From: Macrostomum lignano
Taxonomy: Eukaryota
Length of the DNA stretch: 64,000 nucleotides
NCBI GenBank assembly: GCA_002269645.1
Contig: NIVC01000822.1
Span: forward strand, 310,001-374,000
Direction: 5' to 3'
The translations under genes were made by a program, and so were the position numbers. Below, piece by piece: positions 7,201-56,020 of this stretch (the first letter of the stretch is position 1; every line of letters starts with the position of its first letter). The notes under the pieces were generated by a model. That model was not told the origin of the DNA and made no database searches. It saw nothing but the letters and a program-made list of their open reading frames with translations.

Positions 7201-10200
7201 ACTTCGTTAAGGCTACTCCCTGGTAAACTGGTTCAAGTAGCCTCTCACGCAGTCAATCAGCTAGAAATCCGACTGCCAGTGGCCAAAGAATCCCGAGACC
7301 TTCAGGCTTGTCACTTAAGGATCATTCAACTCTTGTTGATGATCTACGAGTAGCAGTTGATGCCGAAGATTATGTATTCTAACTTGATACGAGCGCGTAT
7401 GACTCGATGGGGTGAGATGTCTCAATCCAGGGGAAGAGGAATCAACAGATGCTGGAAAAATGTCGCTCGATGAAAAACCCACACGTTTCTCGAGGGTTCC
7501 GAAAGGTGAATTTCCGAGTAGGATAAAATCTTTTCCGAGTAAGATATCGCAGCTTTTGGCTCGCGATTTGTCATACCGGAGCACACCGGTTCTGATTGGC
7601 TGAGCATGTTGCCACCCAAACTTGAAATGCCAAAAGATTTTATCAAGTCCCTTAAAAACCCTAAAAAAGTGCCATGAATCACCAACTTTTATTCAAAATG
7701 AGTTTCTATACAAGTTTCAGCAACATCAAATCGAAATTGACATTTAAAAATAAGAATCAAAAGCAGTGTGGAGATTGCAATAGAAATATCTGCAAGAAGA
7801 TTAGGATTAAAACTACGAGCTAATATCGTTGTAAATTTAGGGAGGGGGAGGGCAGATGCGAAAATATCGAATTTAATTGATGGTCTCATGTCAAAAATTA
7901 TAAAAAAGCGCGAATCACGTGGTTTTACCAGACTATCTGGCGCCTTACAGACTCACAGGCCCGCATGCTATGAGACCAGGTGAACAGATAGGTCACTAGA
8001 AAAGAAGAGAAGAAGCATTTGGCATTTCAGAAAAACATGCAAAGTGCTGTGTCAAATCGGGCGCATAATCACTTTCTGAGGGTTCCCCAGTGCGCAGGGC
8101 CTGATAGGATCTCTCGGCCTTTCGGGCCTGGAGCCCAGCCAACCAGAATCTACATGTACGTGTTCCGCTAGCTATAACAAATCGCGAGTGAATTGATTCC
8201 TTTTCAAACTAAAGATACTTTCTACTCGAAACTCAACCTTCTCCTGCTCTCGGTTTTCACCTCCAGTCCGGCTACCACTTCCCCGTCGTGTGACAACAAA
8301 TTAGCAAACACCACTTCGGTGTCAACTTCTAGAACTTCATCGAAAGTCGGCTACCTATTCAGGATTCTTTGGCCAACCGGCAGTCTGATTTTCTGATGGG
8401 GGACTACTGGGTGCAATGAGCACTCTTTATCTGGCCCCGTTTTCAATAGCCTGATCATGGGTATTGCACTTTGTTTGTTTGCTTTTCATTTGCTGCACTT
8501 CCAATGCAGAAATCCAGTGTTTACGAGCGCACTACTGAGAGTAGCTTGTTCGCTCTGTATCAGTTTATATTAGGTTAGTTCCAAGTTTTGTGAAAAGACA
8601 TATCTCATCAAATTATTTATTTTTGCCTTCTTTATTTCATTCGCAATGCGAGCTCAGATGAGCAGCTAAGCTCAAGGGTGGCCAGGTTGTAATAGACCGA
8701 ACGGTAAAACAGGATCCAGTGTGATCAACCAATCATTTTTAACCAGGATTCAAGCCACTGACAGTCATGTGCTTTGAAGAAGATAAGCGGCTTATTTAAT
8801 GTAATAATTCACCTGCAAAGGGTCTCAGCGGGTCTCAGAGGGTTTCAGAAAGTTTTTAGTCGCATTAAGGACTAGAAGCTAGCATATACAAAGGTGATAT
8901 GATAATACATTCCCCGACCCTGTAGTCTCGCCTTGCAAAAACCCCTTGCAAAAAGCTCTCTCTTTCTCCATACACGGTCAGTCCCAGCAGTATCCGTTCT
9001 ATGACTTCTAAATTAACCGGTTGGCTTGTATATTATTTGAGTCTTGAGAGCCCCGTAGTCGCAAACCCGATTTTGAGAGAGCTAATTTAGTTAGCTTTAT
9101 CTCCGGATTATCTGATATCTACCTACCTTTCCGATTCTCCCCGCTCGCTTCTCTTTGTCTTTTCTTAGCTATCGGACCCAATGAGCTGCTATCTTGAGGC
9201 TGACCATCTGTCAGGAGTGGGAGGCCAGAGATTAGGTGATTGATTTCCACGACAAGCCTCTCATCAAGGGCTGTAAAATGCCGTACCCATCATAATGTTG
9301 CGCATTTGAGACTGCTTTTATTTTTAGTATATTGAGAAAAGTGCATTAAAGAGATAAGAAAAGGCTTCAAAAAATCTTCTCTAAGGAAAAGCTGTCTCTA
9401 TCGCTGTTGGCGTATCTAGTTGCGTAGGTATTTTAAGGAATGATATTTTTTTCACAGCCTCCTCCTAATCGTACATAAGACTGTTATTATTACTAGCGCG
9501 TTGCTAAGTGAAGTTAGGTCGGTCCGAGGAATGTAAAATTATATCGGTTGCGTTTGAACAGTTTTAGGAGAGAAAATATTCTATTAAATGGCCATTTTCT
9601 GTCCCTCTTGTTCTGCCCAACGTGCATCTCAGTTTTTTGGGTCTATCTCTCGTTTGTCAAGCACCCGGATTTTAACTTTGAAAAGGAATCTTCGGCTGCT
9701 GGACTGGAGGTCTTCGAATGGCAAGGACTACTAAGACAGACTAAGTGTTTTTGCGCTTGATATTGCTGCTACTGTCTGCATATGGCTCTCAAAGGGAGTG
9801 GGGTGTGCTGCTTCTGTGCAGCTACTTCTATTTGGTCCGTTTCAGGGTGCTCGAAAAACTCTGGACTGGAAACTTCTTCGCTAGCATTGTCTCAATCTAT
9901 TCTATATACCCTTTCAGTGTAGACTGTAGGCTAGATTCTCTTCTTTAGTTTTTTCTGCCCGAAGGTTTACCGCAATTTTGTACTTTTGCTGCAATTTTGA
10001 TCAATAGCTGCCAGAATTTAATATTGTACAGTCATGTGTTTTAGATTTTTTCAAATCCAAAACAATGTCTTCAGACGTCAGGCGAAATGATAAAAAGACT
10101 CATCTGCCACTCCCTCTCAGTCCTGAGCCAACAGACTCATCTTTAAGCTACCCTATTATTTTGGATCAAAAACAACGTGCATACGAGCTAAAAAGTTCAA

Positions 10201-10226
10201 CTGACTGTTAAAATAAACAAAAACTT

Positions 10227-10239
10227 GGGCCGAAAGCCG
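10227..10239. repeat. Target-site duplication GGGCCGAAAGCCG (left copy; right copy at 17065-17077)
   Basis: Exact 13-bp direct repeat flanking the LINE composite. Confidence 0.85.
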
Positions 10240-10526
10240 GCACGCGAAGGTGTATTCAGCACGCCAGTGAAGTATGAGACAGACCAGGCCTATGGGCTAC
10301 GGTCTGCGATGCTTCACGCCTGCCCCTATCTTCAGCAGGTCAAGGCTGGTGGGAGGTCTGCACCCGCTATTTGCCGCTGGCAGCCGCAGACTCCCCCACG
10401 CTGTCTCGCAAGTCGACCCAGGGGTACCCGTCCCCGCGTGTGTTCAAGGCAGACCCTAGGGGGCTGCTGGACAGACTGGGCTCCGGCGCTGGCGACCCTA
10501 TCCAGTGGCTTCGGCCGAATTTGGGT
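10240..10526 (+). ncRNA. Predicted HDV-like (CPEB3-type) self-cleaving ribozyme at the LINE 5' end
   Basis: Manual fold: P1 GCACGCG(10240-46)/CGCGTGT(10435-41) with first-pair G-U wobble; P2 ACCCAG(10416-21)/TTGGGT(10521-26); P3 GGG/CCC around L3 TACCCGT; P1.1 AC(10426-27)/GT(10442-43); P4 base TCAAGGC/GCTTCGG; J4/2 CCGAA. Confidence 0.75.
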
Positions 10527-10731
10527 ATGCGGGTCTGGCCCGCCAGCCTGCAGGCCATGGTGCTGCTTAACGTACCCTCTAATGCCTAAGGTGTTTGACG
10601 GTGCCGATGGGCTGGAAGGCCGGGGAGTAGTCCGGTCGCTAGCGGTCCTTTTTTCAAACCGGCTGGCTTGAGGTGTCGGCCAGTCGGGTACTCAACTCGC
10701 ATAACGAGTAGCCCTCCCCCGCTTTTCAGCT

Positions 10732-12262
10732 ATGGCCACTTTTGCCACCATTCCTAAAGAAACTGACCCGGTCGCCTCTGGCCCACCGAGATCAGCCGCT
10801 CCGGTAGCTACCACTTGTAGCTCCAACGCCCAACCTGGTCCAACCGGGCCAGCTGACGCTGCCGCCGATCACCCTGGCCGCCACTCTAGCCGACCGCGCA
10901 CGGCCGAGTCCCGACGGCAGCGAAACATCCGCCGCAACCGTAAGCGGCAGGAGAAGCGGGCTGCTGTTGCGTCCGCGGAGGGAGGGCAAGCCGCGGTGAG
11001 GCCTTCGGGAGCCACCGCAGCGGGGAGGCCCTCTGGGGAGTCCGGTGGCGCGGCTGGGCCGTCAGGAACCGCCGTGTCCTCGGACTCTCAGGGGGGCAAC
11101 CCTGCCGGCCTACCGCCTTCCAAGGACAAAGCGGCCCCGCTCAAGACCTCCAAGTCCTACGCCTCCAAGGTCAAGCAGCCGCTGCAACCCGCCGTGATGA
11201 TCCTCGGCGGAGATTTTGACCTGACGCCCGAGCAGCTCGACGTCGCGTGGGCACCATCGACGAGGGCTTGCTTGCTCAACCTAACCCTGGAGGGCATCTT
11301 CGTGGACATCATCAAGTCCACCAAGGCGAACGGGTGCATCCTACTGTGGTGCAAATCCGAGGAAAGCACCCAGCTCCTGCGGGATCAGCTGCCCAAGTTC
11401 GACTGGCACAGCGACCTGGGCCAGCTGACCTTCGCCTTGGAGAGCGAGCGGCCGAAGACCATCCGCCATCGGATTTGGGTCCCGGCCGACAGTGCAATCA
11501 AGTCCGGGGAGCAGCTGCGGCAGCTCCTGCTCAAGCGGCACCCGGATCTCGACGCTAGTGGTCTTGTGTACCACAGCACGGTCCGCAAGGGCACGATCGG
11601 GGCCACAGTCATCCTCGGCCTGACGGAGGGATGGGCCAAGCGGCTACCGCACGGCACAAACCTCCACCTTGGTCTCCATCAACTGACCATCCTCCGCTGT
11701 GAGGAGGGCAACGGAGACCAAGAACGGCGGGAAGCGCGCCGCTCCCGGAGTTGGGGCTCAGGCCCCGCCGGCCAAGCGGCAGCAGCAACCCGATCCCGAA
11801 CCTAACAAGGCTATTCGCGCTGCTGAATCCGCCTCGCGCGGACGTAGACCCGCCCGCAGTAACCGGCGGTCCGGGCTAATCCAGCGCGCACTTGACGAAG
11901 CTCAGTCTCTCAGACTTCACCTCGAGCAGACTCGTGCTGCTCGCAAAAACACCGAAAGCCAGCCGAGAGAACTGGACGACGGCATGGCTCAGCCTTCCAA
12001 CTGGTGGGATTACCACCAGGAGGACGCTGCCGGCCGAGCTCAGACTCCCGACGGCGGGGCGCAAGGCGAAGGCAGCAGCCGTACCCCAGTCGCTGGGGGG
12101 GAGGGTGGTGTAGCGCGGCTAGGTGACTCACCTGCCGTGGGCGCCCATTCCGCCTCCGCGGCGGCTAGGGAGGCGGCTGAGCCTGAGCCAATGGAAATTG
12201 GCGACTCAACTCTCACCGATGAGGCTGAGAATGAGTTGCTTTTCTCCTCCCCTGGACAGTAG
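10732..12262 (+). CDS. LINE ORF1 (DUF4780-like nucleic-acid-binding protein), split by a frameshift near 11700-11800
   Basis: Basic low-complexity N-terminus then 'HRIWVPADS...LLKRHPDLD...GATVILG', resembling LOA/Lian ORF1; continues in ORF 11699-12262, which stops 3 nt before ORF2. Confidence 0.6.
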
Positions 12263-12264
12263 AC

Positions 12265-15200
12265 ATGACTGTCTCCCAGGGCATCCACTGCTTGCAGGTC
12301 AACCTGAAGCACAGCATTGCTGCTTCAGTCAACCTCTTGAAGCACACTTACTAACTGACAAGTGACAACCGACGGCGAGATGATCCCAGTAGAGCGTGTC
12401 ACACTGGTCGAGCTCTGCTCCACCAGAAATTATGTGCTGCTTGTGGCAGGCGACATCAATGCCCACCACACCCACTGGGGCAGTTCTGATATAAACCAGA
12501 GAGGTGAAGACTTTCTGGCTTATATTGCTACTACAACCCTTGAGTTCTGTAACTCGGGTAGTACCCCTACCTTCAATAACGGACGCCGATCGGAGGTGCT
12601 GGATGCCACCCTCGCCACGCCCAGGCTCTTCCAGAGCACTAGGGAGTGGCGGGTGCTTTCTGAGGCGTCCCTCTCCGATCACAAGTTCATCTCTTTCACG
12701 CTGGCCAGCGCCCGAAACGCAGGCCAGCTTTACTGGAAACGGAATGCTAGGAATACCGACTGGATCGCCTTCAGGCTTGCCCTGGAGGAGATCTATCGTT
12801 GCACTAGCACTCCAGTCTCCATCAACACCTGCGAGGAAGCAGATGAATTTGCGGCCGCACTTACGGACTCGCTCACTGCTGCCTTCGAAGCCTCATGCCC
12901 ACTAAAGGCAAATAAAGGCAAACAGTCGGCCCCATGTTGGAACCCGCAGCTTGGTGACCTCCGTCGCAGAGCTAAAAGGCTTCACCGTAGGGTCCAAAAA
13001 ACTAAAAACCCGGCAGACCAAACCGCCTACCTGAACTCTATCCACGAGTTCAAGAGGCAGGTTAGGAACGCCAAAACCAACAAGTGGCGCGAATACTGTG
13101 AGGAACTTGAGGGCTCCCGCCCCACCTCCAGAATCGTTAAAGCCCTCACCCTGGACAAAATGTCCAAACTCTCCTCAGTCAAGAGAGCCGACGGCTCGCT
13201 CACTGAGAACCCTGGAGAAACACTGGAAGCGATGCTAACAGCGTTTTTCCCGAACGAGCCAGCCAGGCCCGACCCCCTGATCACTCAGTGGGCGGACACG
13301 TACTGGCTGACTCAATCATCACGGAGGACCGCGTTTCTAAAGCTGTCTCCTCCTTCAAACCCTTCATATCCCCAGGACCGGACGGCGTTGTGCCAGCCTT
13401 CCTGCGGGAGGCGGTGAAATGAACCGGTTTCCTGCAGAACCTTTGCCGGCTTCTGAAAGCTTGCATTGTTTTCGGCTTTGTTCCGAAACCCTGGACCGAG
13501 GCCAAAGTGGTCTTTATCCCCAAGCCCGGCCGATCGGACTACCGGTCTATTAAATCCTTCAGACCAATTAGCCTCACCTTCTCATTGGTGAAGCTGTTAG
13601 AGAGACTGGTGCTCTGGTGCCTCCTCTCTGTGGAACTGAAGAACAAGCCGCTCAGTGAGAACAAGCACGCCTTTCGGGCAGGCAGGTCCACGGAGAGCGC
13701 GCTTCACGTTTTGGTTGACATGCTGGAGAAAGCCGTTCTTGGTAATGGCTAAGCTCTCGCTTTCTTCCTCGACATTGTTGGAGCCTTCGATAATGTCCTC
13801 TTTGAGGCTTTTGACAGAGTTCTACGTGCTAGAGGAACCCACTCGCACCTCACCCGGTGGATCATGTATATGATCAGCCACCGTACTGCCACCGCACACC
13901 TGTTGGGCCACCAACGGACGGTAACCGTCTTCAAAGGCAGCCCCCAGGGCGGTGTCCTCTCTCCAGTTCTCTGGAACATGGTCATCGATGAGCTCCTCCA
14001 GGACAGCCATCTTGACCCCATCCTCAAGGTCGGTTACACCGATGATGTCACAGCCGTGGCATCTGGACCGTCACCTGAAACCCTTAGGGATCTGCTGCAA
14101 AACTTTATTCGCTCTGCTGAACAATGGGCGGACAGGTGCGGCCTCAGACTCTCTGAGACCAAAACTGTCGCGATCATGTTCACCAGCAGGGTAAACTGGC
14201 TTATTCGCCCACTAAAGCTTTACGGGGTGGAAATTCCATCCTGCAAGCAAACCAAGTGTCTCGGCGTTACGCTGGACCACCGGCTGAGCTGGTCCACATA
14301 CGTCCAGGCCAAAACCAAAAAAGCCCTCGCGATTCTTGCGCAGCTGCGCAGAGCCGTCGGCACCACCTGGGGCCTCACCCCAAAACGGCTCTGGTGGATC
14401 TACACCGCAATGGTCCGACCGGCCGTTACTTACGCCGGCCTGGTCTGGACCAGCGCCTTGCAGATTAAAACCTGCCACGAAGCCCTCAAAAAGGTGCAGG
14501 GACGTGCGTGCCGCATGATCCTGAATGCCCCGCTCTCTGCTCCCTTTGACGGCCTCAAAGCCTTTCTTTGCCTCCCGCCTCTGGACATCTTTGTCCGTCA
14601 CGAGGCTGCTAAAACCACCCGCCGGCTCATCGAGGCTGGCGTTAGCTTCAAGCCACAATTGTGATGGCGAAGCGCAAGCTCCTGACGCATTCTGACCTGT
14701 GCCTTTAAGTTCTGGAGGAGAGTGGGAGTGCGGCTGTCCTTTCGGACGCTGAGCCGCGCTCCCTCAATCTCTACCAACGCTTCAAGGTCACTATCCCCTC
14801 CAGGGAGAACGCCAACGACAGCTGGGCCCTCAGGAGGTTCACTGCTTTACTGACGGATCCTCCAAAGACGGTTTATCCGGCTTTGGAGTCTGCATCCTTA
14901 TTAACGGCCGCGTGATTGCTACTCACGCCCAACACACTGGCAGACTCTCCAGCGTCTTCCAGAATGAAGTTCTTGCCATCAGCTCCTGTGCAGCTGAGCT
15001 CCACTGCAGGGACTTCAAGGACAGAAGAATCTTCTTCCACTCTGACAGCCAGGCCGCTTTACAGGCCCTGTGTCACACCACTACGAACTCCCGAACAGTC
15101 CGCGACTGTATCGGGCAGCTCAACAAGCTGGCTCGGAGGAACAGCGTCCGGCTTATGTGGATCCCAGGACACGCCGGCTTCAAAGGTAACGAGCTCGCCG

Positions 15201-15727
15201 ACTCCCTCGCTAAGGCGGGCTGTTCCAGCTCGCCCCTTGGCCCCGTGCGCCTGGCCCCCATCCCCGCCACAGTCATTAATCGTCAGATTAACGACTGGGC
15301 GGACATCCTGCACTTGCGCAGATGGGATGGTATCTCCAACTGCCGCCAATCTCGTGCGGCAGTGCCCAATTCGTCCCTCAAGCTGCGGAGAATCCTTTTG
15401 AACCAAAATCGAAAAGATATCCGCGCTCTCACTATGACCTTCACAGGTCACGGTTGCTTTGCCAGGCACTGTTTCCTCCGAAGTTCCCGCCGGAGCGAAC
15501 TCTGCCCTTTCTGCAACCTCGAGAACGAAGACGCCAAGCACTTCGTCTGCTACTGCCCGGCCTTCAACCGAGACCGGCTCAACCACCTCGGGCCCAACCC
15601 GTCCCTGGTCGACGTTTGCCGGCCCGAGAACATCCCACGGCTCATCCGGTTCCTCCGGGCCACCAAGCGAGCCTCCGTCTTCCCTACCGAAGACAACGCT
15701 GCAGACAGGACCGGCAGACCTCCCTGA
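12265..15727 (+). pseudogene. LINE ORF2 (APE endonuclease, RT, RNase H, zinc knuckle), disrupted by a deletion, frameshifts and stops
   Basis: ATG at 12265; domains spread over ORFs 12362-13417, 13507-13752, 13864-14664 and 14912-15727. The catalytic motif reads YTDD rather than YADD. Confidence 0.85.
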
Positions 15728-15838
15728 CCGGCCCCGCGCCCTAGCCTATGCGGGTTTTTCAGGGATTAGCGAAATGGGCGACGCTCGCCTCCCCGCTGCG
15801 TCTTCGGACCGCCCTGCAGCTAAGTCAAGTAAGTCAAG

Positions 15839-17064
15839 CGGCTAAGACTGCCCGCCGTCTAGCTGACGCTGGCATTCGAATCCAGCCCCATAGGGCCATG
15901 GCTAAGCGCAAGCTTCTGCCCCACGCCGACCTCTGCCTCAAGGACTTGAGAGACAGCGGCGGGCTCCACGTCCTATCTGACGGCGAACCCCGCACTCTCA
16001 ACCTCTTTCAGCGCTACAAGATCACCATGCCCTCTAGGGATGCTGCCAATGACCACTGGAATTTCCAGGAGGTCCATTGCTACACGGACGGATCCATCAA
16101 AGACGGTCGCGCCGGCTTTGGGGTCTGCTTCATCATCAACGGCCGCGTAATTGCCACGCATGCCCAGCACACTGGTAGACTCTCCACAGTCTTCGAGAAC
16201 GAAGTCCTTGCCATCAGCTCTTGCGCTGCAGAGCTGAACGCCAAGGGTACGAGAGGAAAGACTATTGTCATCTACTCCGATGGCCAAGCGGCCTTACAGG
16301 CCCTTTGCCACACCAAAACGAACTCCCGGACAGTCGCCGACTGCGCTCGGCAGCTCAACCTCCTGGCCAGTAGCAATACTGTCAGGCTGAAGTGGATCCC
16401 AGGGCACGCAGGGTTTCCGGGGAACGAGCTGGCAGACACCCTCGCCAAGAGGGGCGGCTTTGGCTCTTTCTTCGGCCCTGCCCCCCCCCCGGTCCCTATG
16501 CCCTTGACAGTCATCAATCGTCAGATCGACGACTGGGCTGACTCCCTCCACAGGGACAGATGGGCGGGCACCCAAAACTGCCCCGGTAATCTCGTGCCGC
16601 GGTTCCTTGCCCGTCTCGCAGGCTCAGAAACATCCTTCTGAACCAGAATCGGAAGGATATTCGAGCCCTTGTCATGACCCTCACGGGCCATGGCTACCTC
16701 GCCAGGCAATGCTTCCTCCGAGGTGACCTCGAGAGCGAATTTTTCCCCTTTTGCGAGTGCGACAATGAAGATGCTCAGCACTTTGTTCGTCACTGCCCTT
16801 TCTTTACCAGAGACCGGCTACGCTACCCGTCTTGACGAGGTTTGCCAACCCGACAGCATCTCACGGCTCATCCAGTTCCTTCGGGTGACTAGACGAGCCA
16901 ATTTCTTCCCAACGGAAGATCACGCTGCAGGACGGACCGGCGGACCACCCTGACCGGCCCCACGCCTCTGCCTGTCTGCGGGCCTTCAGGGGCTAGCGGA
17001 ATGGGCGACCCTCGCCTCCCCGCTGTGTCTACGGACCACCCTGCAGCTAAGTCAAGTAAGTCAA
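15839..17064 (+). mobile_element. 5'-truncated second LINE of a diverged subfamily (RNase H, zinc knuckle, 3'UTR, (TAAGTCAAG)2 tail)
   Basis: Colinear with 14605-15838 but with many substitutions; 'CYTDGS', 'WIPGHAGFPGNELADTLAK'; identical tail. Confidence 0.9.
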
Positions 17065-18411
17065 GGGCCGAAAGCCGATTGAAAAAGCGAATAGTGGGGA
17101 ATTAGAATTACTGGTACATCTACTGCTCTGGCTTTGGATTGGAGTGTGAACGCGCGTTTATTATTACTGCTTGTGGTTGAACGAGTTAAATAATATAGCT
17201 AGCCCAATCAATCTGGATAGGTACGCGTATAATTAGATAAATAGCCTTTTAGACATTTTTGCCCCAGCAGCATCAACGTGTACTTGGATATCTAAACAAA
17301 ATTGAGCCAAAACTACGCGGGCATAAATGGCAGACAAACTTTGAAAAAGTGTCGACAAAAAATAACTGGTCACAAAAATTATCCGCATAAGCACATGAAA
17401 TAAATTGGTTACTGGAATGATATAGCTCGTAGAAAGATGCGTAAAAAATTGTTTAGTCACGGGCTCACACCTAAGAAAACGCTTAAATGTGCAAAATATT
17501 GAAATAATATATCAATTTGTTTTAGTGTACTCACAATGAAAAATGAGAGCAAAGAGTGGTTAAAAACTAAATTAAGTTACTATGTATTGAATTTAAAAAG
17601 GTAAATTTACTTAAATTTTAACTTTAAACAGGCAAGAATCAAACGAATTGTGGCTGTAAAAAGCCAATTAATTCGCGAGTTCTTGATAGCTGTTGATTCG
17701 GTGTGGACACAAAATTGCAGCTGAACATTTTTCTGAATGTCGAAACGATGGCTTGACACATGTGCAATAGCGATTAGTTAGTTCTGGCCATTATTCCCCA
17801 GTGCTAATAATAACACCAAGAATTTTAATCAATATGGTGATGGAAACTTGGTTGTAGATTTTTTACATAATATTTGGCTTAGGACCAAAATTTGTGCTAT
17901 TTTGTGCCTTTACCGCTTTACATGTATTTGGGTGCAACTAAGTGCAACAAAATACATGTACGGTCGTAGATTGCCTGGGAAAATATAGTTGAGTATTCAG
18001 GTTTAGTTATACGAGTATCTAGATTCCAGCTGTTACAGCAAAAAGCTAGATGTCAAAGATGCAAAGAAATATCGTAATTCAAATATTATTTTTGGATTCG
18101 GATTGTTATTTGTTATTTTAAAATGAGAATTATAAAAAAGGCTGCTTGCTTTAGCTAAAGCCTTTTTAACACGTCAAGCAGCGGCAAAGATCAATATTTA
18201 AGCAGCGAAACTAAGAATTTTAATATCAAGTTCTTTTTTGCTTGAGCCATCCACTGCATATCCGATATATATGAATATATAGCTAGCTATTTTTAATTTT
18301 AATTAATTGGATGCTTAAAAATTAAGGAAATATAGAAAAACGCGACAACGCATTTAGCACAAAAAGTATCTGCACACTGAACCTGTCTAAGCCTGCGAGT
18401 CGCTGCTACCT

Positions 18412-21400
18412 TTAAGAGAACAGCCATTTGGCTAGCCTCTCGATACCTCCTCGGATGTACGCAGTGATGCCATAGACGCTCGTCGGCTTCGGAAAAAACT
18501 CTTCGTACCTGCGGTAAACTCGGGTCTCGGTCTGCAGGAGTACGTTCAGCAGCTCGTCCTTGCCTAGGTTCTCAGCTCGGACAGCGAGCTCTCGAATATC
18601 CAGCAGTTGTTGGATTCGGTCGCGATACCCATCATCCTTGCTCATCTGCTCGGCGTCAATCAGCTTGTCAATGTAGTCAACCTCGTTCAGAGGGTCAGGC
18701 TTCAGAGCGATCTGCTGCAGGCGCCCGATGCACTTTTTGCTCTCCTTGACCAGCTGCATCACGTTGGCCTTCATCCCGAGGTACTCCTCATACACCCGCT
18801 GCGCCAGCTGCTTGGCCGACAGCAGTTTCCCCTCCGCATCGGTGTAGCGACCTTTCAGGTCATCCGACGTCTTTGTAACAGTTTGCTGAGTAATAACAAA
18901 TTTGTATGTCATGTTCTTGTGGACTGACCATACACAACCACTTTCGCACACGTGGCAATGGCCATCTTTCATCGCCACGCAGTGAATTTTGTCTGCATCG
19001 TCGGATAACGCACATGGATAGTGGCACGTCCTGTTGCACGTTAGACAGTTCGTGATGTAAGTTCCGGAAGGAATCGGCTGGCAGACTGCTGTGTCTTCCA
19101 CCACTGTGTATGTGAAGTTGCGGTTACGGTCCAAATCTGACTGGTGAGCCTTGATAACGGATATTTCGCGCTCCAGCTGATTCAACTTGTTCAGACCTTG
19201 ATCGATCTCCGCCTTGATGGCAATTAAGTGAGTCTGCAGTCTCTGTCGCTCACTCAGAACATCTTTGGTCAGGGTCAGGCTCTTTGCCGTAATCTTCATC
19301 AAGTGGGAGAAAAATCCTTGAAAGCTGTTTATTCCCATATCCCAGAACATTCTGTTGAACATTTGGCTCGTCTGGTCCATTTCCTGACACTTGGCAAATA
19401 CAGCAGAGTTGTTGAATTTGATGTGTAAATTGTAGCAGATCCTCGCTTCCTTAAGGGACTCGAGTACAGGAGGTATATTTGCATCAGCAAATGTGATTAG
19501 CATGTAGATGTTTTCGCCAATATCCTTACCGAACAGAGAGAGGATCGAGTCGAAAACGTATCGCTGCGTTGGCGTCAGTCTGGCGACACTCGAAGGCACC
19601 ACAAAGCCCACAGCATCCAAGTGATCAATGCCACTTGGACAAGAGAAGAACTCTCTGATTCGGTCGACAATCTTCTTGTCGTTCATGATGCCGCCAGTGT
19701 CACCAAATCCTGGCGTGTCCACCAGAGTCAACGAGCAAGGTTGCTGACAGCCATCGCGATGGTGAAATGTGTAGGATGTGACCCATTGAGTTTGACTCAT
19801 TGACTGAAATGTCTTAAGTTTCTTTTCCTTTGGATCTGTAACGACTCTGAAGCGAAACGGGTCTTCGTACTTCACACCGAAGATGTAGTTGACCATCGAG
19901 TTGATCAGAGTAGTTTTTCCAGAGCCAGTTTCACCAACGATCATAATCACTTTCTCATCAAATCCGGAGAAACTATCGCGTCCGAACTCCATTTTCCGAA
20001 CTTGGTGCACTGGATCACAGAACGTCTGGTCCATTTGCAACTCGTACTCAAGAGGCGGCGTAGCCTCAGAATCTAGTTTTAGAGAAGAGTTGAGCAAATT
20101 ATACTTCATTCTGTCCGCTAATGTCGATTTTACTTCATGGGTGACATTCCTTCTCTGCTCTCCAACAGAGTTATCTGAGAGCACTGCTGAAGCAGAAAAT
20201 GCACAGCAGCCATCTCCATTGACTTCGATGGGAACAGTCTTTTGCGAAGGATCAGCCTTAACATAAGTCTCATGGCCTGAGCTGTGTCCCTGCTCGAGCA
20301 CAGTGATTCGATAACCAACCAGACGGGCTTTTTGCTGCTGCAACACAGGCGGAGTCAGCTCTAGTTCCACACGAAATGGGGACACCTGCGTAACTGAAGC
20401 AATGTCCGGAGCGGCGCATGCCAATGTTGTCACCATCGGCAGATATTTCACTTCGCAGCGACCGAACATCCGAATGGTCTGATAGGACACCTGATAGGCG
20501 GTACCCATTTTCAACTGCTCAAGTCGAGCAATTCCACCGTTTGAGCCAAAGTTTTTGATGAGCTCCATCCACTCATTGCTGTGTTCTTCCTTGTAGCGAA
20601 TCGACACACCTTGAACTTCGTTTTCTTTAAAATCAGCAGCTCTCAGAGGTGAAAATAGCAGCTCAATTGCATTTGACACAGAACGCACGGAGCCAACAGA
20701 AAGGGATGCGGAAAAACTCTCAATAGAGAATAATATTGAGTCCAGGCGTTCAAGTACAATATGAGCACGAATTATTTTTTCGGCTTGCTGTTGCAACTTT
20801 ATGCAAAGATGCCAATCGTCTTGTTGATCATTAGCCTCAATTACTTTTAGCATAGCTTGCAAACTTTGGGTACAATCTTTGAGAGCAGTCGCAAGATCGA
20901 AATCCTCCCATTGCAGCAACTTTGGTGCGTTGGTTGGAAATACCAACGACACGGTGCAGCAGGTCTTGCCACCAGCTGGTTCAAAAGCTTTCGATTTTGA
21001 CAGCTGCGTTATAGCCGTTAAGACATCGAGAAACTCACCCAGCATTGGCAACCAGCTAAAGCTGGGAACGAAAGGAATGCAGTCCTTCAGAGATGCGGGT
21101 GTCTGGGTGCTGTTTCTAACTCGAACTTTGTTCACTGTAACATTATTCTGCACAAACTGCAAAGCTGTAGTCAGTGTTTTGCGTAGATACGGAACATCAT
21201 GTAGCACTTTGTAGCCCAGAAGCTCCTCAATACTTCGAGCCACCTTCTGACCTTCGTATAGCCGCTGCAGCACATCTGCACTGGTATTACACCCTTGAAC
21301 GGAACTCTGCTGCTTGCTGGCATCAAAAACTTTAAACAGATTGGCAGCATGAAGTGGTCCTTCGGGAGCAGCATCCATTTTTTCAAGAGAGTCTTTAAAC

Positions 21401-22021
21401 TCAGACAGACCCATTAGTATTACGGTGCCATTTAAAAATGTTTTAATCTTGGCCGTTTCAATGTCGCCATCGCCTGAAAATGAAAACATGGAACAACTAG
21501 TGAAAATTTAAAACAAAACATATTCTATGCTTTAATATCTTAGCGCGACATCAAAGGGTCGTACCTTTCACGATTCCACACAGCAGCCACCCTTGCGACA
21601 CGCAGGATACTTCACCGGGCTTTACACCTCCCTGATCAACTGCACTGGCAGAGACGCATTTTTCTTGGAGAACGCCTATCACTAGCTGCTTGGAGAAGTC
21701 GCAGTTGTCCCACAGGTAATGCAGCAGGTCTTGAAGCGAGCAGTTGACATTACTCGTACTTGGCGATGCGTGGCAAATAAGCTTCAGAGCCTGCAGAGAA
21801 GTCAGGCCGAGAGCAGCGACATCGCTTAGAAATGTGTCCGAGCTGTCAAAGAATATTTCTATTTTTTTGTTGCTGACCGCATCCTTGAGTCTGAACTCTG
21901 CTCCAGGGGAGGAATCGCCATGCGAACTCTCAATAAAGCTGTCCGACTCTACTGAGTATTGCTGACCCAGGTTAACTTGTCTGTCAAATGAATGCAGCCA
22001 AGCAGATTGACGGAATGACAT
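18412..22021 (-). CDS. Two-exon gene join(21565-22021,18412-21473), about 1172 aa: stonustoxin-like N-terminal domain + 2 FN3 + septin/AIG1-like GTPase + Cys-rich insert + coiled coil
   Basis: GT-AG intron 21474-21564 (91 nt, phase 1) joins ORFs 21551-22021 and 18412-21489 in frame. N-terminal 'SFDRQVNLGQQYSVESDSFI' resembles the SNTX ALGRPFxLGMLYDxRxD start (lower confidence). FN3-like 'YKEEHSNEW...LEQLKMGTAYQV'; G1/G3 motifs. Confidence 0.8.
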
Positions 22022-28695: not shown

Positions 28696-29201
28696 CTAGC
28701 TGTTGAAACCTGCAGATTTTGAACCCGGGGAATTCCAATCCCCGGAACTATTTTTGCATGTATTTTGAAATCCAAGGCCATACACAACAAAAACTTGTTA
28801 ATAGTTAGTAGAGTAGAGGTAAATATAAAGTGGAGTACATTCGTGTAAAATTTGGATTTGAGGCAAACAGTGATATTGTTGGCTGGGGTGCTGCGCAGAA
28901 TGTGAGGCAATGTCGGTCTGACTCTGAACATGTAATTGACAAACTCTGGCCTCTGCCTCTGACTCTCCCTACGTACCTTGGATCCTTTGAAACTTATATC
29001 TTCTCTTCTGTTTCCTCTCTTCTCTCTCGTCTGCTATCTCATCTCTCCTTTCTCCTCTTTTATCTCTTCTCTTTTCTCTCTGCTCTCTACTCTCTCTTCT
29101 CTCCCCTCTTCTCATTCCTCACTCTCCCCTCTCTCAACACTTCCATCTTCTCTCCTCTCTCCTCTACTCTATCTCATCTCTCCTCTCTACTCTTACCTCT
29201 C

Positions 29202-29232
<31 letters not shown>

Positions 29233-29750
29233 CTCTCTCTCACACACACACTCTCTCTCTCCCATTTCTATTCTCCTCTCTCTTCTCATCTCTGTAAGAT
29301 CTTTTCTCTTATCTCTCCTCGTTCTATCTAAACTCCCATCTCCCGTCTGTTCACTCTCGTCTTTGCTGCCTCATCCCCCTCTTTCATCTGTCATCTTCTC
29401 TGATCTCTCATTTCTCATCTCTCCTTGCACCTCTCTCATCTCTACAACCTTTGAGATGTAGAGATGTATTTTGATCTCTTCTCTCTTCCCTTTAATCTCT
29501 CATCTCTCCTTTCACCTCTTTCCTCTCTCCTCTCTGCTCCTCTCTCCTTTCTCCTCTCATCTGCAGCTCTCTGCTCTCTAATCTCTACTCTCTTCTCTCT
29601 CTTCTCTACTCGCTCCTCTCTACTCTCTCCTCTCTAATCTTATCTCTCTCATCTCGCTTCTCCTCTCTCCCCTCTTCTCCCCCTTTCTCTCTCATCGACC
29701 TCACCCCTCGTCTTATCCCTTATTATCCTTTATCGCCTCTCCTCTCTTTT
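28696..29750 (-). mobile_element. Helitron-like non-autonomous element with internal CT-rich degenerate microsatellite (copy 1)
   Basis: Minus-strand CTAG|T terminus at 28696 with hairpin CCGGGGA/TCCCCGG; the ~250 bp head is homologous to 35287-35520. The right-hand end is not defined. Confidence 0.5.
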
Positions 29751-31227
29751 CGAAAAAGGACAGATTTTTCATTTTTTATGTATACATATTTAATTACCAT
29801 TTACGATACTACGTTATATCTTAGGAGCACTACCACAACTACAGAATACACAGAGACTGTGACCACAACTCTTTTCTGATCTGGACTAATGAAAAAACTA
29901 AAAAAACTAATTTGACCAATAAAGTGATTAGTAACGTTTTTTTTTCAATAGTAGTCAATAGTATTATTAATATATTCTAGTACTGTTATTATTATTATTA
30001 CCAAAATAATTGTCAATATACATCGACGACCTACTATAAGAGCACGGATGACACTGTTAATTAATATCCCTCGAGCAAGGGAAACTTCACATAAAACTTA
30101 GCACGTTACACCACTCCGATACGAAAGTAAATATACTTTATTAGTTCGACAATAAGGGTTACTGCACCAAAGCAGTCATGAAAGTTAATAAAGTAGTTAT
30201 AGTCAATGACGAGATTAGCGGATTAAGTGGATGCAGTTACATGGATTAGCAATTTATTAGCTCGCTCACAGAATAAAAAAAACATTTGACAGGCTCAATT
30301 ACAAAGTGTGACAAACCAAATAATTTCATTCACTACGGCAGCAAGGTCCGGTTGTCACTGCACTGCAGAGTCTGTCGCTCGGCCAGGACCCTAGGTAGCG
30401 CAATCGCTGGTGGTGCAACCTTTGGCAGCGGTATCTCTTCCTGAATCTGCGCAGCCGACGTTGGTATCACGGCCCACAGCCGCTGGATTCGCTCGACTGA
30501 TGCTTCTGCTATAGGCGAGATCCGGAAAGACCCGGGTCGACCCATGGACTCCGTCGTCTGGTTTGCCGACGGGTTTCCTGACGACGTCCGCTTGGCCTCT
30601 TTCGACGCCTCTGCCTTCAAGTGTCGATTAACTATTCTGATCTTGCTCTTCTGCATCCAAGTCTATAGATTTATGTCAGTTTCACCTATGCTAGCATCTA
30701 GAGCCTGAGTATCCATTGTCCCTGTCTCTTAGGAGGAATGAGTGTAAGATTATTCAGATGAGCGAAGATTGTTTTACCAACGTACCACTCTCGTCTTGTC
30801 TCTAGGAGACAATTGTGATAATTGTTTTCAAGTTTCTAATTGAGACGCTCAACAAGTCCTGGAAAGCAACACAGATCGGAAAAGAATGAATCGAAGCCTT
30901 CGGTTCATGCCTCGGTTTACTCTCATTACCAGTCTGATGTATGCACGCACAAGGCGCTGCTAGCAGCTGGCACTTCCATTCTCTCAGTCGAAAGCACTTT
31001 ACAAGTCCGTGGCGGAACTTTAGAATAACAGAGATAGGGACACAGGTCGTTTTTCAGGACAAGAGTACCTTCCGGGAACTTTAATTTAGTGTCTGACAAT
31101 AACGGAGTGCGAACTGCATGCCTAGAACATTCTCGGTGTCTTGTTTGCACAACAGGAACTTAATTCAACTCAACACGGAGATCCCCGATTTGCACAAATG
31201 CTTCGGCCTCGCCGAACAACGGAATAT

Positions 31228-34636: not shown

Positions 34637-35286
34637 GATTTAGCTAGGTATTGACCATTTTGGTAAAAGACCACTTGGACAAAGGCCACTTTGGCAAAAG
34701 ACAATTTTGGAGAATCCATTTTGACAAATGAAATGACTACTTTGGCAAAGCCTGTGGAACTTAACGAAGCATTTTTAACAAAACAAGACCATGGAATGCT
34801 TACTAGCACGAGATTTTCTCTGGCAGAGAAATTAATCTTTGCTTCTTGGAATACTGAGTTCATCTACTAATGAGATTCTAAGATTATCTCTACATTCTAA
34901 GATTATTGCTGCAATAATCTTAATAAAACCTAATGCACTTTTAAGTAAATTGTAAAGGGATTTTGTATGACATAATTGCCATATTTTGGGAGAAAATGCT
35001 AATTGATAGAGTATATTGTAAGACTATCAAATGAAGCTTTTTTGTAGCCTGCTTGGCAACATGTGTTGACTCTATATGATGGGATGCCATGCCATAGCGC
35101 ATAAAAATGTACAAAATTAACCATGCTGTTTTGGCTTAGACTTACTCATAGGCTTATTGAAGGAATTTGGCCTAATGAAAAATCTATGCAATGAAATATA
35201 CATTATGCTTCTTTGCACAAGAATTTTCTTATATATGTACCATGGAAAGGATACCATAGTAGAGGAAGATTTGGTATATATATATA

Positions 35287-37030
35287 CAAGCTGTTGAAAC
35301 CCGTAGATTTTGAACCCGGGGAACTCCATTCCCTGGAATTATTTTTGCATGTATTCTAAAATCTGAGGTAAAACTCAAACAAAAACTTGTTCCCTTGTTA
35401 ATAGCTAGGATAGAGTTAAACATAAAATAGTGTACATTCATGTAAAATTAGGATTTGAGGCAAACATTGATATTGTTGCCTGGGGTGCTGCGCAGAATGT
35501 CTGGCAAACTCTGGCCTCTATGTACCTCTGCCTCTCCCTATGTCCTTTGCATCCTTTGAAACTTCCATCTTCTTTTCTGTTTCCTATCTTCTCTCTCGTC
35601 TCTTCTCTCTCTCCCCTCTTATCTCTTCTTTCTTCTCTCCTCTCTCGTCTCCTCTCTCGTCTCTTCCCTCTCCCCTCTATTCTTTTCTCTCTCTTCTCCT
35701 CTCTTCGCTCTGGTCTCTGGTCTCTCATATCTCATTTCTTCTGTTTTATCTTTTCTCATTTCTCTCTGCTCTCTACTCTCTCTTCCCTCTGCTCTCTGCT
35801 TTCTCTTCCCTCACCTCTCTTCTCACTCCTTACTATACCCTCTCTCAACACTTTCCTTATCTCTACTCTCTCCTTTTTCCTCTCTTCTCTCAACTCTTTC
35901 CTCTCCTCTGTCCACTCTTTCCTCTCATCTCTCTGCTCTCTCCTATCCTATCTCTCTTCTCTCTCTTCTCTCCCCTCTTTCCTCTCCTCTCTCGTCCTTT
36001 TCACCAATTTCCCCTGTCCTCTCTATTCTCTCCCCCTCCTCTCTCCTCACTCACTTCTCATCTCTCCCTTGTCTCCACCTCTCATTCCTTATTTCTTATC
36101 TCTCCTCTTTTCTCTCTACTCTCCCATCTCTCGTCTGTTCACTCTCGTTTCTGCTCTCTCATCTCCCCTCTCTTATCTGTCATCCTTACTCTCATATGTT
36201 ATCTCACCTCTCTTCCCTTGTACTCCTCTCTTTCCCCTTTTTGACTCAGGAGGACTCGATCCTTTCTTCTTTCTTCTCGTCTCGTCTCTTCTCTCTTCTA
36301 TACTTTCTCCCTCTCTTGTCTTCTCTCTTCTTTCTCACTCTCCTCTCTCCTCTCTTATATCGTCTTTTCACTCTCATCGTTGCTCTCTCATTCCCCTCTC
36401 TCTTCTGTCATCTCTACTCTCCTCTCTACTGTGCACTCTTCTCTTTCCCCTCTTCTGACTCCTCTCTTTCCTTACTCCTCTCTTCTCTTCCCTCTTCTAT
36501 ACTCTCTCCCCTCTATTCTCTTTTATCGTCTCTCCGCACTCTGCTCTCTCTTCCTTCATCTCTTATCTCTACTTTACTCTCTCATATTTCCTTTCATCTC
36601 ACTCATCTCTACAATCTTATCTCTTTCCTCTCTCCTCCTCTTCCCTTTACTCTATCATCTCTCCTTTGTCCTCTCTTCTTTCTCAACTCTCTCTCTCATC
36701 TCTATCTTCTCTCTTCTCTCTCGTCTCTCCCCCTCTTATCTCCTCTCCTCTATCCTTTCTAATCCCCCCTCTCGATACTCTCATCTCCTCGTTGTTCTCT
36801 CATCTCACTCTTCTCTACTCTCCTCTCTCATCGATCCTCTGTCTCATCTCTCCCCTCTTCTCTCCATCTTCTCACCTCTACTATTTCCTCTCCCTTCTCT
36901 CTCCCCTCCTCTCGCTTCTTCGTCCCATATTCTCTGCTCTCTCCTCAACCTCCTCGTATGTCTCTCCTGTTATCTTCTATCTTTTCTTTTATCCCCTCTT
37001 GCCCCTCCTCCCTTTCTAATAGTCTATTCC
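35287..37030 (-). mobile_element. Helitron-like element with 1.5 kb CT-rich tract (copy 2)
   Basis: Head homologous to 28696-28940, hairpin CCGGGGAA/TTCCCTGG; long degenerate (CT)/(CTCCT)-type tract. Confidence 0.5.
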
Positions 37031-41923: not shown

Positions 41924-44900
41924 CTCCTACTGCGACCGTCAGCTGCCCGACTGTCGCTGCTGCTGTGCCGCAGGTTGTTCAGCAACAGCGGCGGCGGCGG
42001 CTCCGAGCTGGTGTACGGCATTCACCCGGTCTGGCAGGCGCTGTTGTCTCGCCGTCGTCGAATTGACGAAATCTACGTTGACATTCGACACCAAGGGCAA
42101 AGCGACGTCATAGAAGACTTCGGCTGCGACAGCTCCAGCTCGGCCGAGCTGCGCCAGCTCATCGCTGCCAGCTATGCTCACCTGGTCAGGTACGCTGACA
42201 GGCGCGAACTGGCCGCTCTGTGCCGGGGTCGGGCGCATCAAGGATTCGCGCTGCGGTGCGGACACTTCCCTGTGCCTGTGCTGCCCGGCTGTGCCTCCGA
42301 CTGCCGCTCTGAGCTGGCGGCGAGTCGGCTGTGTGTGCTGCTGGACCAGGTGGGGAAGAGATGCAGGGGAGAATGGGGAAGAGATGCAGGGTGAATGGGG
42401 AAGAGATGCAGGGTATAATGGGGAAGAGATGCAGGGGAGAATGGGCAAGAGATGCAGGGTATAATGGGGGAGAGATGCAGGGTATAATGGGGAAGAGATG
42501 CAGGGTAGAATGGGGAAGAGATGCAGGGTAGAATGGGGAAGAGATGCAGGGTATAATGGGGAAGAGATGCAGGGTAGAATGGGCAAGAGATGCAGGGTAT
42601 AATGGGGGAGAGATGCAGGGTATAATGGGGAAGAGATGCAGGGTATAATGGGGAAGAGATGCAGGGTAGAATGGGCAAGAGATGCAGGGTATAATGGGGG
42701 AGAGATGCAGGGTATAATGGGTGAGAGATGCAGGGGAGAATGGGCAAGAGATGCATTGGAGAGAATCGGCAAGAGATGCATTGGGGAGAATCGGCAAGAG
42801 ATGCATTGGGGAGAATCGGCAAGAGATGCATTGAAGAATGGGCAAGAGACGCATTGGAGAGAATCGGCAAGAGATGCATTGGAGAGAATCGGCAAGAGAT
42901 GCATTGGAGAGAATCGGCAAGAGATGCATTGGGGAGAATCGGCAAGAGATGCATTGGAGAGAATCGGCAAGAGATGCATTGGAGAGAATCGGCAAGAGAT
43001 GCATTGGAGAGAATCGGCAAGAGATGCATTGGAGAGAATCGGCAAGAGATGCATTGGAGAGAATCGGCAAGAGATGCATTGGAGAGAATGGGCAAGAGAT
43101 GCATTGGAGAGAATCGGCAAGAGATGCATTGGAGAGAATCGGCAAGAGATGCATTGGAGAGAATCGGCAAGAGATGCATTGGAGAGAATCGGCAAGAGAT
43201 GCATTGGAGAGAATCGGCAAGAGATGCATTGGAGAGAATGGGCAAGAGATGCATTGGAGAGAATGGGCAAGAGATGCATTGGAGAGAATCGGCAAGAGAT
43301 GCATTGGAGAGAATCGGCAAGAGATGCATTGGAGAGAATCGGCAAGAGATGCATTGGAGAGAATCGGCAAGAGATGCATTGGAGAGAATCGGCAAGAGAT
43401 GCATTGGAGAGAATCGGCAAGAGATGCATTGGAGAGAATCGGCAAGAGATGCATTGGAGAGAATCGGCAAGAGATGCATTGGAGAGAATCGGCAAGAGAT
43501 GCATTAGAGAGAATCGGCAAGAGATGCATTGGGGAGAATCGGCAAGAGATGCATTGAAGAATGGGCAAGAGATGCATTGGAGAGAATCGGCAAGAGATGC
43601 ATTGGAGAGAATCGGCAAGAGATGCATTGGAGAGAATCGGCAAGAGATGCATTGGAGAGAATCGGCAAGAGATGCATTGGAGAGAATCGGCAAGAGATGC
43701 ATTAGAGAGAATCGGCAAGAGATGCATTGGAGAGAATCGGCAAGAGATGCATTAGAGAGAATCGGCAAGAGATGCATTGGAGAGAATCGGCAAGAGATGC
43801 ATTGGGGAGAATCGGCAAGAGATGCATTGAAGAATGGGCAAGAGATGCATTGGAGAGAATCGGCAAGAGATGCATTGGAGAGAATCGGCAAGAGATGCAT
43901 TGGGGAGAATCGGCAAGAGATGCATTGAAGAATGGGCAAGAGATGCATTGGAGAGAATCGGCAAGAGATGCATTGGAGAGAATCGGCAAGAGATGCATTG
44001 GAGAGAATCGGCAAGAGATGCATTGGAGAGAATCGGCAAGAGATGCATTGGAGAGAATCGGCAAGAGATGCATTGAAGAATGGGCAAGAGATGCATTGGA
44101 GAGAATGGGCAAGAGATGCATTGGAGAGAATCGGCAAGAGATGCATTGGAGAGAATCGGCAAGAGATGCATTGGAGAGAATCGGCAAGAGATGCATTGGA
44201 GAGAATCGGCAAGAGATGCATTGGAGAGAATCGGCAAGAGATGCATTGGAGAGAATCGGCAAGAGATGCATTGGAGAGAATCGGCAAGAGATGCATTGGA
44301 GAGAATCGGCAAGAGATGCATTGGAGAGAATCGGCAAGAGATGCATTGGAGAGAATCGGCAAGAGATGCATTGGAGAGAATCGGCAAGAGATGCATTGGA
44401 GAGAATCGGCAAGAGATGCATTGGAGAGAATCGGCAAGAGATGCATTGGAGAGAATCGGCAAGAGATGCATTGGAGAGAATCGGCAAGAGATGCATTGGA
44501 GAGAATCGGCAAGAGATGCATTGGAGAGAATCGGCAAGAGATGCATTGGAGAGAATCGGCAAGAGATGCATTGGAGAGAATCGGCAAGAGATGCATTGGA
44601 GAGAATCGGCAAGAGATGCATTGGAGAGAATGGGCAAGAGATGCATTGAAGAATGGGCAAGAGATGCATTGGAGAGAATCGGCAAGAGATGCATTGGAGA
44701 GAATCGGCAAGAGATGCATTGGAGAGAATGGGCAAGAGATGCATTGGAGAGAATGGGCAAGAGATGCATTAGAGAGTATCGGCAAGAGATGCATTGGAGA
44801 GTATCGGCAAGAGATGCATTGAAGAATGGGCAAGATCACATGAATCAGCACGCACCCGCAGGTGGTGGACATCCTTAACTTCGGCAGTCTGCTCCGCACC

Positions 44901-54124: not shown

Positions 54125-55260
<1,136 letters not shown>

Positions 55261-55837: not shown

Positions 55838-56020
55838 GCGTCACTCTCACCCTGTGTCACTCTCACCCTGTGTCACTCTCACCCTGTGTCACTCTCACCC
55901 TGTGTCACTCTCACCCTGTGTCACTCTCACCCTGTGTCACTCTCACCCTGTGTCACTCTCACCCTGTGTCACTCTCACCCTGTGTCACTCTCACACCCTG
56001 TCACTCACCCTCTGCCATCC
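55838..56020. repeat. 16-bp minisatellite (TCACTCTCACCCTGTG), about 10 copies
   Basis: Directly visible. Confidence 0.9.

Follow-up and report, generated by a model that had tools for sequence, protein, structure and literature searches.

The 5' end of a non-LTR retrotransposon in Macrostomum lignano probably encodes a self-cleaving ribozyme of the HDV-like type. In the window, by which we mean the whole stretch of 64,000 nucleotides that was analysed (contig NIVC01000822.1, positions 310,001 to 374,000), the first 241 bases of a LINE (10240-10480) can be arranged as a nested double pseudoknot which, judging from its sequence and that of its relatives, would constitute the 5' terminus of the LINE RNA. 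An earlier note on this DNA had proposed that an RNase H-bearing LINE begins exactly at the cleavage site of an HDV-like ribozyme. This proposal holds, as helices P1, P1.1 and P2 covary among related elements and one of these, L012, starts at the homologous G+1; the 3' half of the ribozyme, however, has to be drawn differently than in that note. The coordinates of all features are given in Table 1.

Table 1. Features of the LINE insertion and of its putative 5' ribozyme in the window
Feature	Coordinates	Strand	Details
5' TSD copy, GGGCCGAAAGCCG	10227..10239	+	perfect 13-nt match to 17065-77
P1 5' strand, GCACGCG	10240..10246	+	pairs 7/7 with 10435-41; 2 compensatory double changes relative to L012
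J1/2 peripheral domain, 170 nt	10247..10416	+	several hairpins; folding, RNAalifold with L012
P2 5' strand, CCCAG	10417..10421	+	directly adjoins P3; pairs with 10476-80; 4 of 6 P2 columns compensatory (window, L001, L012)
P3 (GGG/CCC) and 7-nt L3 (UACCCGU)	10422..10434	+	10422-24 with 10432-34; P3 invariant in three sequences
P1 3' strand, CGCGUGU	10435..10441	+	pairs with 10240-46
J1/4 dinucleotide GU, P1.1 3' strand	10442..10443	+	both P1.1 pairs double-changed
P4 domain	10444..10471	+	4-nt linker UCAA, hairpin 10448-10468, 3' linker GGA; per-sequence folding
J4/2, CAGA	10472..10475	+	C10472, candidate catalytic cytosine
P2 3' strand, CUGGG	10476..10480	+	3' end of the ribozyme; covariation
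Conserved hairpin 3' of the ribozyme	10495..10526	+	ACCC 10495-98 with GGGU 10523-26 around GGCUUCGGCC-GAAU; in window, L001, L012
ORF1	10732..12262	+	+1 frameshift near 11740
ORF2	12362..15727	+	APE endonuclease, RT, RNase H, C-terminal CCHC motif; Pfam
5'-truncated copy of a sister element	15838..17064	+	72% identical, head-to-tail with the full-length copy; both copies end (TAAGTCAAG)x2
3' TSD copy	17065..17077	+	match to 5' copy, 10227..10239

The ends of the insertion are marked by a perfect target site duplication (TSD) of 13 bp, whose sequence occurs in the window at these two places alone, even when two mismatches are allowed. The duplication defines the insertion as 10240-17064, with G10240 as its first base. 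The 5' copy of the TSD ends in G10239, which would be nucleotide -1 relative to the cut; the TSD boundary thus coincides exactly with the site before G10240 at which cleavage had been predicted in the earlier note. Three domains are recognizable in ORF2 by Pfam matches (Exo_endo_phos_2, RVT_1 and RNase_H), in agreement with the previous description of the element as an RNase H-bearing LINE. With these domains, a separate ORF1, the TSD and a 3' tail of short repeats, the element is a LINE of the APE/RT/RNase H non-LTR type. Its ORF1 product is about 90% identical, over the aligned residues, to the M. lignano UniRef protein A0A1I8FVG9. ORF2 bears at least two frameshifts, and its tblastn segments are spread over three frames. 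The open reading frames of this copy are dead, and all pairings of the ribozyme are still intact.

The insertion is chimeric, since a full-length copy (10240-15837) and a truncated copy of a sister element share one TSD. The 3' end of each copy, at the 15837/15838 junction and at 17064, reads CTGCAGCTAAGTCAAGTAAGTCAAG. Such a head-to-tail arrangement within one TSD looks like the outcome of a single insertion during which the reverse transcriptase switched template between LINE RNAs, onto the 3' end of the second. Just downstream of the LINE and on the opposite strand lies an uninterrupted ORF of 1025 amino acids (18412-21489, minus strand), with a central P-loop GTPase domain that gives weak matches to Septin, AIG1 and MMR_HSR1. 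Exact-protein look-ups with the window ORF1, with this neighbouring ORF and with the protein P0034 returned no record.

The elements of the putative ribozyme follow one another in the order P1-J1/2-P2-P3-L3-P3'-P1'-P1.1-P4-J4/2-P2', which is correct in the window and in both related elements, L012 and L001, the P1 5' strand of the latter lying off its contig. P1 comprises 7 bp counted from G10240, the first base past the TSD, and 6 bp in L012, where it starts from contig nucleotide 1. Its opening pair, G10240-U10441, is a wobble in the window alone, the counterpart being G1-C194 in L012 and, as implied by C114, a G-C pair in L001; the seven-pair P1 (10240-46/10435-41) with a first-base G-U wobble had been described before, as had P3 and L3, and we arrived at the same assignments. 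L3 is a loop of 7 nt closed by the 3-bp P3, with U at its 5' end and G at position 6, as in HDV-like ribozymes. It reads UACCCGU in the window, UUCUCGU in L001 and UCUCCGU in L012, so the signature U....GU is invariant, and U10425 and G10430 fall on the conserved U and G positions. The Nasonia R2 ribozyme was shown to require the G at position 6, which forms a reverse-wobble pair (PMC3774820). P1.1 consists of C10427-G10442 and A10426-U10443 in the window, of C-G and U-U in L001, and of U-A and C-G in L012; both columns covary in the three sequences. The unusual A-U/C-G version of this helix had already been noted from the window alone. The P4 hairpin (8 bp, with A10453 bulged and the loop UAGG) is separated from the conserved cytosine discussed below by 1-3 unpaired purines (range over the three sequences), where a Watson-Crick pair would be usual. 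These purines, the shortness of P2 (no more than 5 bp in the window) and the limitation of the G-U wobble to one sequence are departures from canonical HDV-like ribozymes. The P1 5' strand has a further version, GCACGCC, at 10259-10265 (19 nt from the first base of the element), with the potential to pair at six of seven positions with P1'; its position is not kept in L012.

The comparative evidence for this fold was drawn from three sequences: the window, L001 and L012. L001, the one match of the ORF1 search, is a JGI contig with a homologous 5'UTR; its ORF1 is 52% identical to that of the window, and the aligned stretches of ORF2 are 67-89% identical. The core is kept in it, and the contig ends about 85 nt upstream of the core, so that L001 was compared without its 5' end, for which the model predicts a start of GCUCGC(G). 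L012 is the Logan contig (from ERR14788467) of P0036, a protein found by an HMM search with the ORF1 domain. It is 6,492 nt long, holds a full-length related LINE with ORF1, ORF2 and a 3' end (CUGCAGCUAAGUCAA.G) as in the window, and continues beyond the 3' end of the LINE into flanking sequence. Its first bases, GCCUGCAAUGG, align to GCACGCGAAGG of the window, which places the start of this contig (of RNA or DNA origin) at the homologous G+1. In L012, P1 is formed by G1-C6 (GCCUGC) with G189-C194 (GCAGGC), P2 by C170-A175 (CUCAGA) with U232-G237 (UCUGAG) in six Watson-Crick pairs, P3 by G176-78 with C186-88, and P1.1 by U181-A195 and C180-G196, while P4 is an 11-bp hairpin whose stem sequence is entirely different from that of the window.

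The core alignment of 47 columns was built by hand, by adjacency to the invariant P3, and is ungapped save for one N. Standard pairs fill 95.7% of its cells over the three sequences. Compensatory double changes were found at 8 of the 18 pairs of P1, P1.1 and P2 (two, two and four, respectively), those of P1 relative to L012 being A-U to C-G and C-G to U-A. In none of 500 shuffled alignments was the pairing, the number of double changes or the covariation score as high as observed, and no double change was left when the pairing partners were slid by -3 to +3 columns. Because MAFFT misaligned the P4 strings, P4 was compared by folding each sequence separately; a hairpin forms at the equivalent position in all three (-11.3, -14.8 and -24.5 kcal/mol). 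The HDV-like fold and its covariation are observed properties of these elements, as is the coincidence of the first base of P1 with the 5' end of the element in two independent elements. The expectation that the pairings are kept in relatives was borne out for P1, P1.1 and P2 formed with its proximal 3' strand, and failed in L012 for the distal P2 strand favoured earlier.

It could be argued that a GC-rich UTR permits the drawing of an HDV-like structure by chance once J1/2 is allowed to span hundreds of nucleotides. A loose descriptor, built to the model of the earlier note and with J1/2 of up to 450 nt, recovered precisely that model from the sequence and was run on both strands of the block-shuffled window. 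It gave 3.1 matches per shuffled window, no fewer than the 2 observed, and when a 2-bp P1.1 was included, 1.25 matches per shuffled window versus 1 observed; for the core-plus-P1 signature, 0.48 matches are expected per window. The possibility of drawing an HDV-like fold is, on its own, not above chance. An unrelated loose core match (31057/31127) is found at 31057-31150 on the plus strand, with P3 ACA/UGU, L3 UUCUCGG and P1 GGACAAG/CUUGUUU; the sequence around it is AT-rich and unremarkable, a stricter descriptor misses it, and it belongs to a kind of which about 0.5 would be expected by chance. The situation is different when P1 is anchored on the first base defined by the TSD, as only 3 of 20,000 dinucleotide shuffles of the UTR then match (~1.5e-4). 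Moreover, the corrected compact descriptor, with 0.1 matches expected per shuffled window, found one match in the window, at the 10240 site, and one in L012, with P1 at contig nucleotide 1, and no others. An accidental match is thus extremely improbable, and is effectively refuted by the covariation in three elements and by the match at the first nucleotide of L012.

MFE folding of 10240-10530 gave z = -0.42, a value uninformative for a pseudoknot. Rfam release 15, whose HDV-like families include HDV_ribozyme, CPEB3_ribozyme, drz-Agam, drz-Bflo and drz-Spur, detected no ribozyme in the whole window at the gathering score, no match at E<=10 in 10150-10750, 10395-10535 or L001 1-260, and nothing relevant in the related loci. 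Such a result is to be expected, since the models are narrow, blind to pseudoknots and faced here with an insertion of 170 nt. Elsewhere in the window, extreme GC and AT skew was noted at about 29000-30000, 35000-37000, 42000-45000, 50000-51000, 54000-56000, 57000-59000 and 60000-61000, with GC skew reaching -0.85 at one extreme and +0.5 at the other, which suggests strand-asymmetric simple or satellite-like repeats.

The 3' half of the ribozyme is where our model departs from the previous one, in which P2' was placed at 10521-26, J4/2 at CCGAA (10515-19) with C10516 or C10515 as the catalytic residue, and P4 was taken to be the whole of 10444-10514, a multi-hairpin domain of 71 nt. The distal P2' strand does exist; its pairing with the P2 5' strand would amount to 6 bp in the window and to 5 bp in L001. 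In each of the three sequences a small hairpin precedes a C-N-A-A-like motif (CGAAU, CAAA, CUAAA), the window version of which matches J4/2 of the CPEB3 ribozyme, and the GGCUUCGGCC-RAAU block (10495-10526) is almost invariant between the window and L001. However, the L012 homologue of the distal strand, CCGGGU, cannot pair with CUCAGA; at best four pairs, of which two are G-U, can be drawn between it and the P2 5' region, at the cost of a 4-nt gap before P3, whereas the proximal strand is fully Watson-Crick paired there. It is with this proximal strand (10476-80 in the window, U147-G152 in L001, U232-G237 in L012) that P2 covaries at four of six columns. In all three sequences an ACCC some 25 nt upstream offers the distal GGGU a local partner, and such a pairing explains the conservation of GGGU without recourse to P2. 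C10515 and C10516 belong to the same separate downstream structure, as they lie within GGC-UUCG-GCC, the window version of an inner GC-loop-GC hairpin present also in L001 and L012. It is therefore very unlikely that the distal arrangement is the active one, and we assign P4 to the 10448-68 hairpin and P2' to the proximal strand. Since the conserved candidate catalytic cytosine is C10472, a C10516U mutant, proposed previously as a control, would be uninformative, and would probably not abolish cleavage.

The part of the 5'UTR that lies 3' of the ribozyme (window 10481-10731; L001 153-520; L012 238-547) contains blocks more conserved than ORF1. Apart from the one described above, a 28-nt block, CCGGGGAGTAGTCCGGTCGCTAGCGGTC (10620-47), has an identical counterpart in L001 and includes a CCGG-loop-CCGG hairpin, found also in L012, and a third block, GGCCAGTCGGGTACT...TAACGAGTAGCCC (10679-10717), is located just 5' of the ATG.

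In the proximal arrangement, the only cytosine conserved between P4 and P2' is C10472, corresponding to C143 of L001 and C228 of L012 and standing always 4 nt before P2'; we infer that it is the likely catalytic residue. The remainder of J4/2 is variable (CAGA in the window, CGUG in L001, CUGC in L012). No adenosine is conserved there in the three sequences, and the fold thus departs from other HDV-like ribozymes, in which a J4/2 adenosine is constrained; in the R2 ribozyme this residue was described as the "constrained A" (PMC3774820).

Such an atypical J4/2, together with the lack of Rfam matches and with the predicted nature of the catalysis, is compatible with another interpretation, namely that the conserved structure is a non-catalytic RNA (an internal promoter, a translation-initiation element, or a site of ORF1p/ORF2p binding or packaging) and that the 5' end of the element is set by precise initiation of transcription. 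Other large parts of the UTR, outside the ribozyme, are equally conserved, and the 5'-terminal 77 nt of L1Tc were demonstrated to act both as a promoter and as a ribozyme (PMC3383444), which makes a promoter role plausible here as well, in addition to cleavage or instead of it. Nevertheless, the HDV double pseudoknot is matched in all of its parts with the correct order and spacing, including a 3-bp P3, a 7-nt L3 with the HDV-like U and G, a P1.1 of 2 bp and a conserved C 4 nt before P2', and its P1 begins on the terminal nucleotide. A non-catalytic role does not predict that the first 6-7 nt of an element should pair with a strand 190 nt away, beside a core of this kind. We consider a purely structural function quite unlikely, and self-cleavage remains our preferred reading of the conserved fold.

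The size of the ribozyme is due to J1/2, which is a structured and conserved domain and no mere spacer. Its hairpins (approximately 10267-10317, 10318-10340 and 10347-10398) agree within 1-2 nt with those drawn previously in a J1/2 of about 170 nt. RNAalifold of the window with L012 gave 43 pairs, of which 10 show compensatory changes, the 10267-10317 hairpin included. The domain is closed by a helix of G10250-G10252 with C10407-C10409 in the window and of G11-G14 with C159-C162 in L012. The pairs of this helix are G-C/U-G/G-C and G-C/C-G/A-U/G-C, respectively, with one G-C to A-U double change, and the linkers left by it measure 3-4 nt to P1 and 7 nt to P2. It was shown previously that large HDV-like ribozymes become more active through a J1/2 helix that pinches P1 and P2 together (PMC4908430), and that silkmoth R2 ribozymes with J1/2 of 216-498 nt are active and lose cleavage when the loop is deleted (PMC3774820). 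Because long and structured J1/2 regions are known from these two studies, the designation of the present case as a new ribozyme variant was overstated, even though the ribozyme itself is supported.

Some alternative pairings were found around this domain. In L001, G76-C81 is complementary over 6 bp to the P1' strand of the same contig (G109-C114), and would give a compact fold of 77 nt. We rejected this local P1 as the main cleavage helix: the strand 76-81 is homologous to the strand that closes J1/2 in the window and in L012 (that of the window pairs at 4 of 6 positions with P1'), and the sequence upstream of it, being conserved with covariation between the window and L012, must be inherited. 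The 76-81/109-114 pairing may represent an alternative conformer, or a coincidence. Two further strands are duplicated, ACCC at 10416-21 and 10495-98 and UGGG at 10477-80 and 10523-26. One may imagine a distinct subclass of HDV-like ribozymes, characterized by a big conserved multi-hairpin J1/2 and a J4/2 devoid of the canonical adenosines, in which the alternative pairing of P1' and the duplicated ACCC/UGGG strands would allow a toggle between cleaving and non-cleaving states. We regard this as unlikely; if it were true, self-cleavage would be regulated and not constitutive, and would decide whether a transcript serves as a retrotransposition template or as an mRNA.

Outside these three sequences, no HDV-like core was encountered. 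Scans of metagenome, prokaryotic-genome and viral collections with a 20-22-nt conserved UTR block as a DNA pattern gave no matches, a protein-guided metagenome scan returned three distant loci alone (31-39% identity), each devoid of the core, and a word-index search with the ORF1 profile gave no matches, probably being swamped by low-complexity words. In the related loci L003-L009 (30-39% ORF2 identity), no HDV-like core was detected under three descriptors. The ribozyme appears to be confined to this LINE sub-lineage, or else to have diverged past the descriptors used. One family (36% ORF2 identity, an ORF1 with DUF4780) is represented by both L003 and L004, which are independent insertions of it; they have a common sharp 5' end, GTAGGGGTAG... 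(L003 1-60, L004 1-45), in which no HDV-like core was detected.

By analogy with R2 and L1Tc, the following course of events may be proposed. Transcription of the LINE would start at a host promoter upstream or at a promoter of the element itself, and the RNA would cut itself between G10239 and G10240, with C10472 serving as the general acid/base. Upstream sequence would be shed in this way, leaving a 5'-OH on G+1, and the LINE may thereby be released from read-through transcripts. As the entire ribozyme lies 3' of the cut, it would be passed to each new copy by full-length reverse transcripts. A full-length cDNA would end at G+1, and for this reason the TSD abuts that nucleotide. The fold retained on the RNA might additionally influence its translation or stability.

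HDV-like ribozymes were previously demonstrated to cleave at the 5' junction of R2 and of L1Tc (PMC3774820, PMC3185411). Like the R2 ribozymes, especially those of silkmoths (PMC3774820), the structure described here caps a non-LTR element with a double pseudoknot, cleavage by which would set the 5' end of the element, with P1 of 6-7 bp, P2 of at least 5 bp, a variable P4 and few conserved nucleotides beyond L3 and the catalytic C, for which the present ribozyme has a candidate. J1/2 is very long in both, although the sequence of this region shows little identity among silkmoths, whereas it is conserved and covarying in the LINE studied here, and the constrained A of J4/2 occurs in R2 and not in our element. 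The host elements differ as well: R2 is specific to a site in 28S rDNA, relies on Pol I for its co-transcription and has one ORF, with a restriction-like endonuclease, while the window LINE has two ORFs, the APE/RT/RNase H set of domains and a 13-bp TSD at a non-rDNA site. In several R2s P1 takes in 28S sequence; here it lies wholly within the element.

In its host the present ribozyme resembles that of L1Tc, also an RNase H-bearing APE LINE whose mRNA begins directly with a ribozyme, and this ribozyme is inherited because the cut falls upstream of +1. L1TcRz, however, is compact (77 nt) and doubles as the internal promoter Pr77, whereas the ribozyme of the window reaches 241 nt owing to J1/2; there is no sequence similarity between the two, and the host phyla are different. 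In the drz-Agam-2 family (PMC4908430), as in the window, a structured J1/2 sits on short linkers and is placed so as to pinch P1 and P2, but there the region contains a single P1.2 helix, in contrast to the multi-hairpin domain of about 160 nt in the window, which is a candidate activator only.

The CPEB3 ribozyme of mammals is intronic, within a host gene, measures no more than about 68 nt, and has the J4/2 CGAAU with its adenosines. It shares with the present ribozyme an L3 of the type U-N-C-N-C-G-U, the J1/4 dinucleotide GU and a weak P1.1; the L3 of L001, UUCUCGU, is one base off the CPEB3 version quoted in the earlier note, UUCACGU.

Among flatworm LINEs, the closest parallel is Perere-3, an RTE element of Schistosoma mansoni with a 5' ribozyme that is a variant of twister and with TSDs that abut the cleavage site (PMC8501958). 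For Perere-3, as for the window LINE, the ribozyme is proposed to free the element from co-transcripts and to favour translation downstream. A part of P1 is contributed by the TSD in Perere-3, where activity therefore depends on the insertion site (PMC8501958); in the window LINE the ribozyme is of the HDV-like class and P1 is entirely internal, so that its activity is predicted to be independent of the site of insertion. Our literature search found no paper tying HDV-like ribozymes to Macrostomum, and the twister variant was the only 5' ribozyme of Platyhelminthes LINEs found in it (PMC8501958).

Processing of LINE 5' ends by HDV-like ribozymes and the existence of long J1/2 loops are both already published. 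Since Rfam models miss ribozymes of the kind described here, pipelines used for annotation of LINEs will overlook them. What the present analysis would add is a natural, covariation-supported case of a large structured J1/2 domain, and the extension of HDV-like 5'-end processing to a free-living flatworm, in a LINE family with two ORFs and an RNase H domain.
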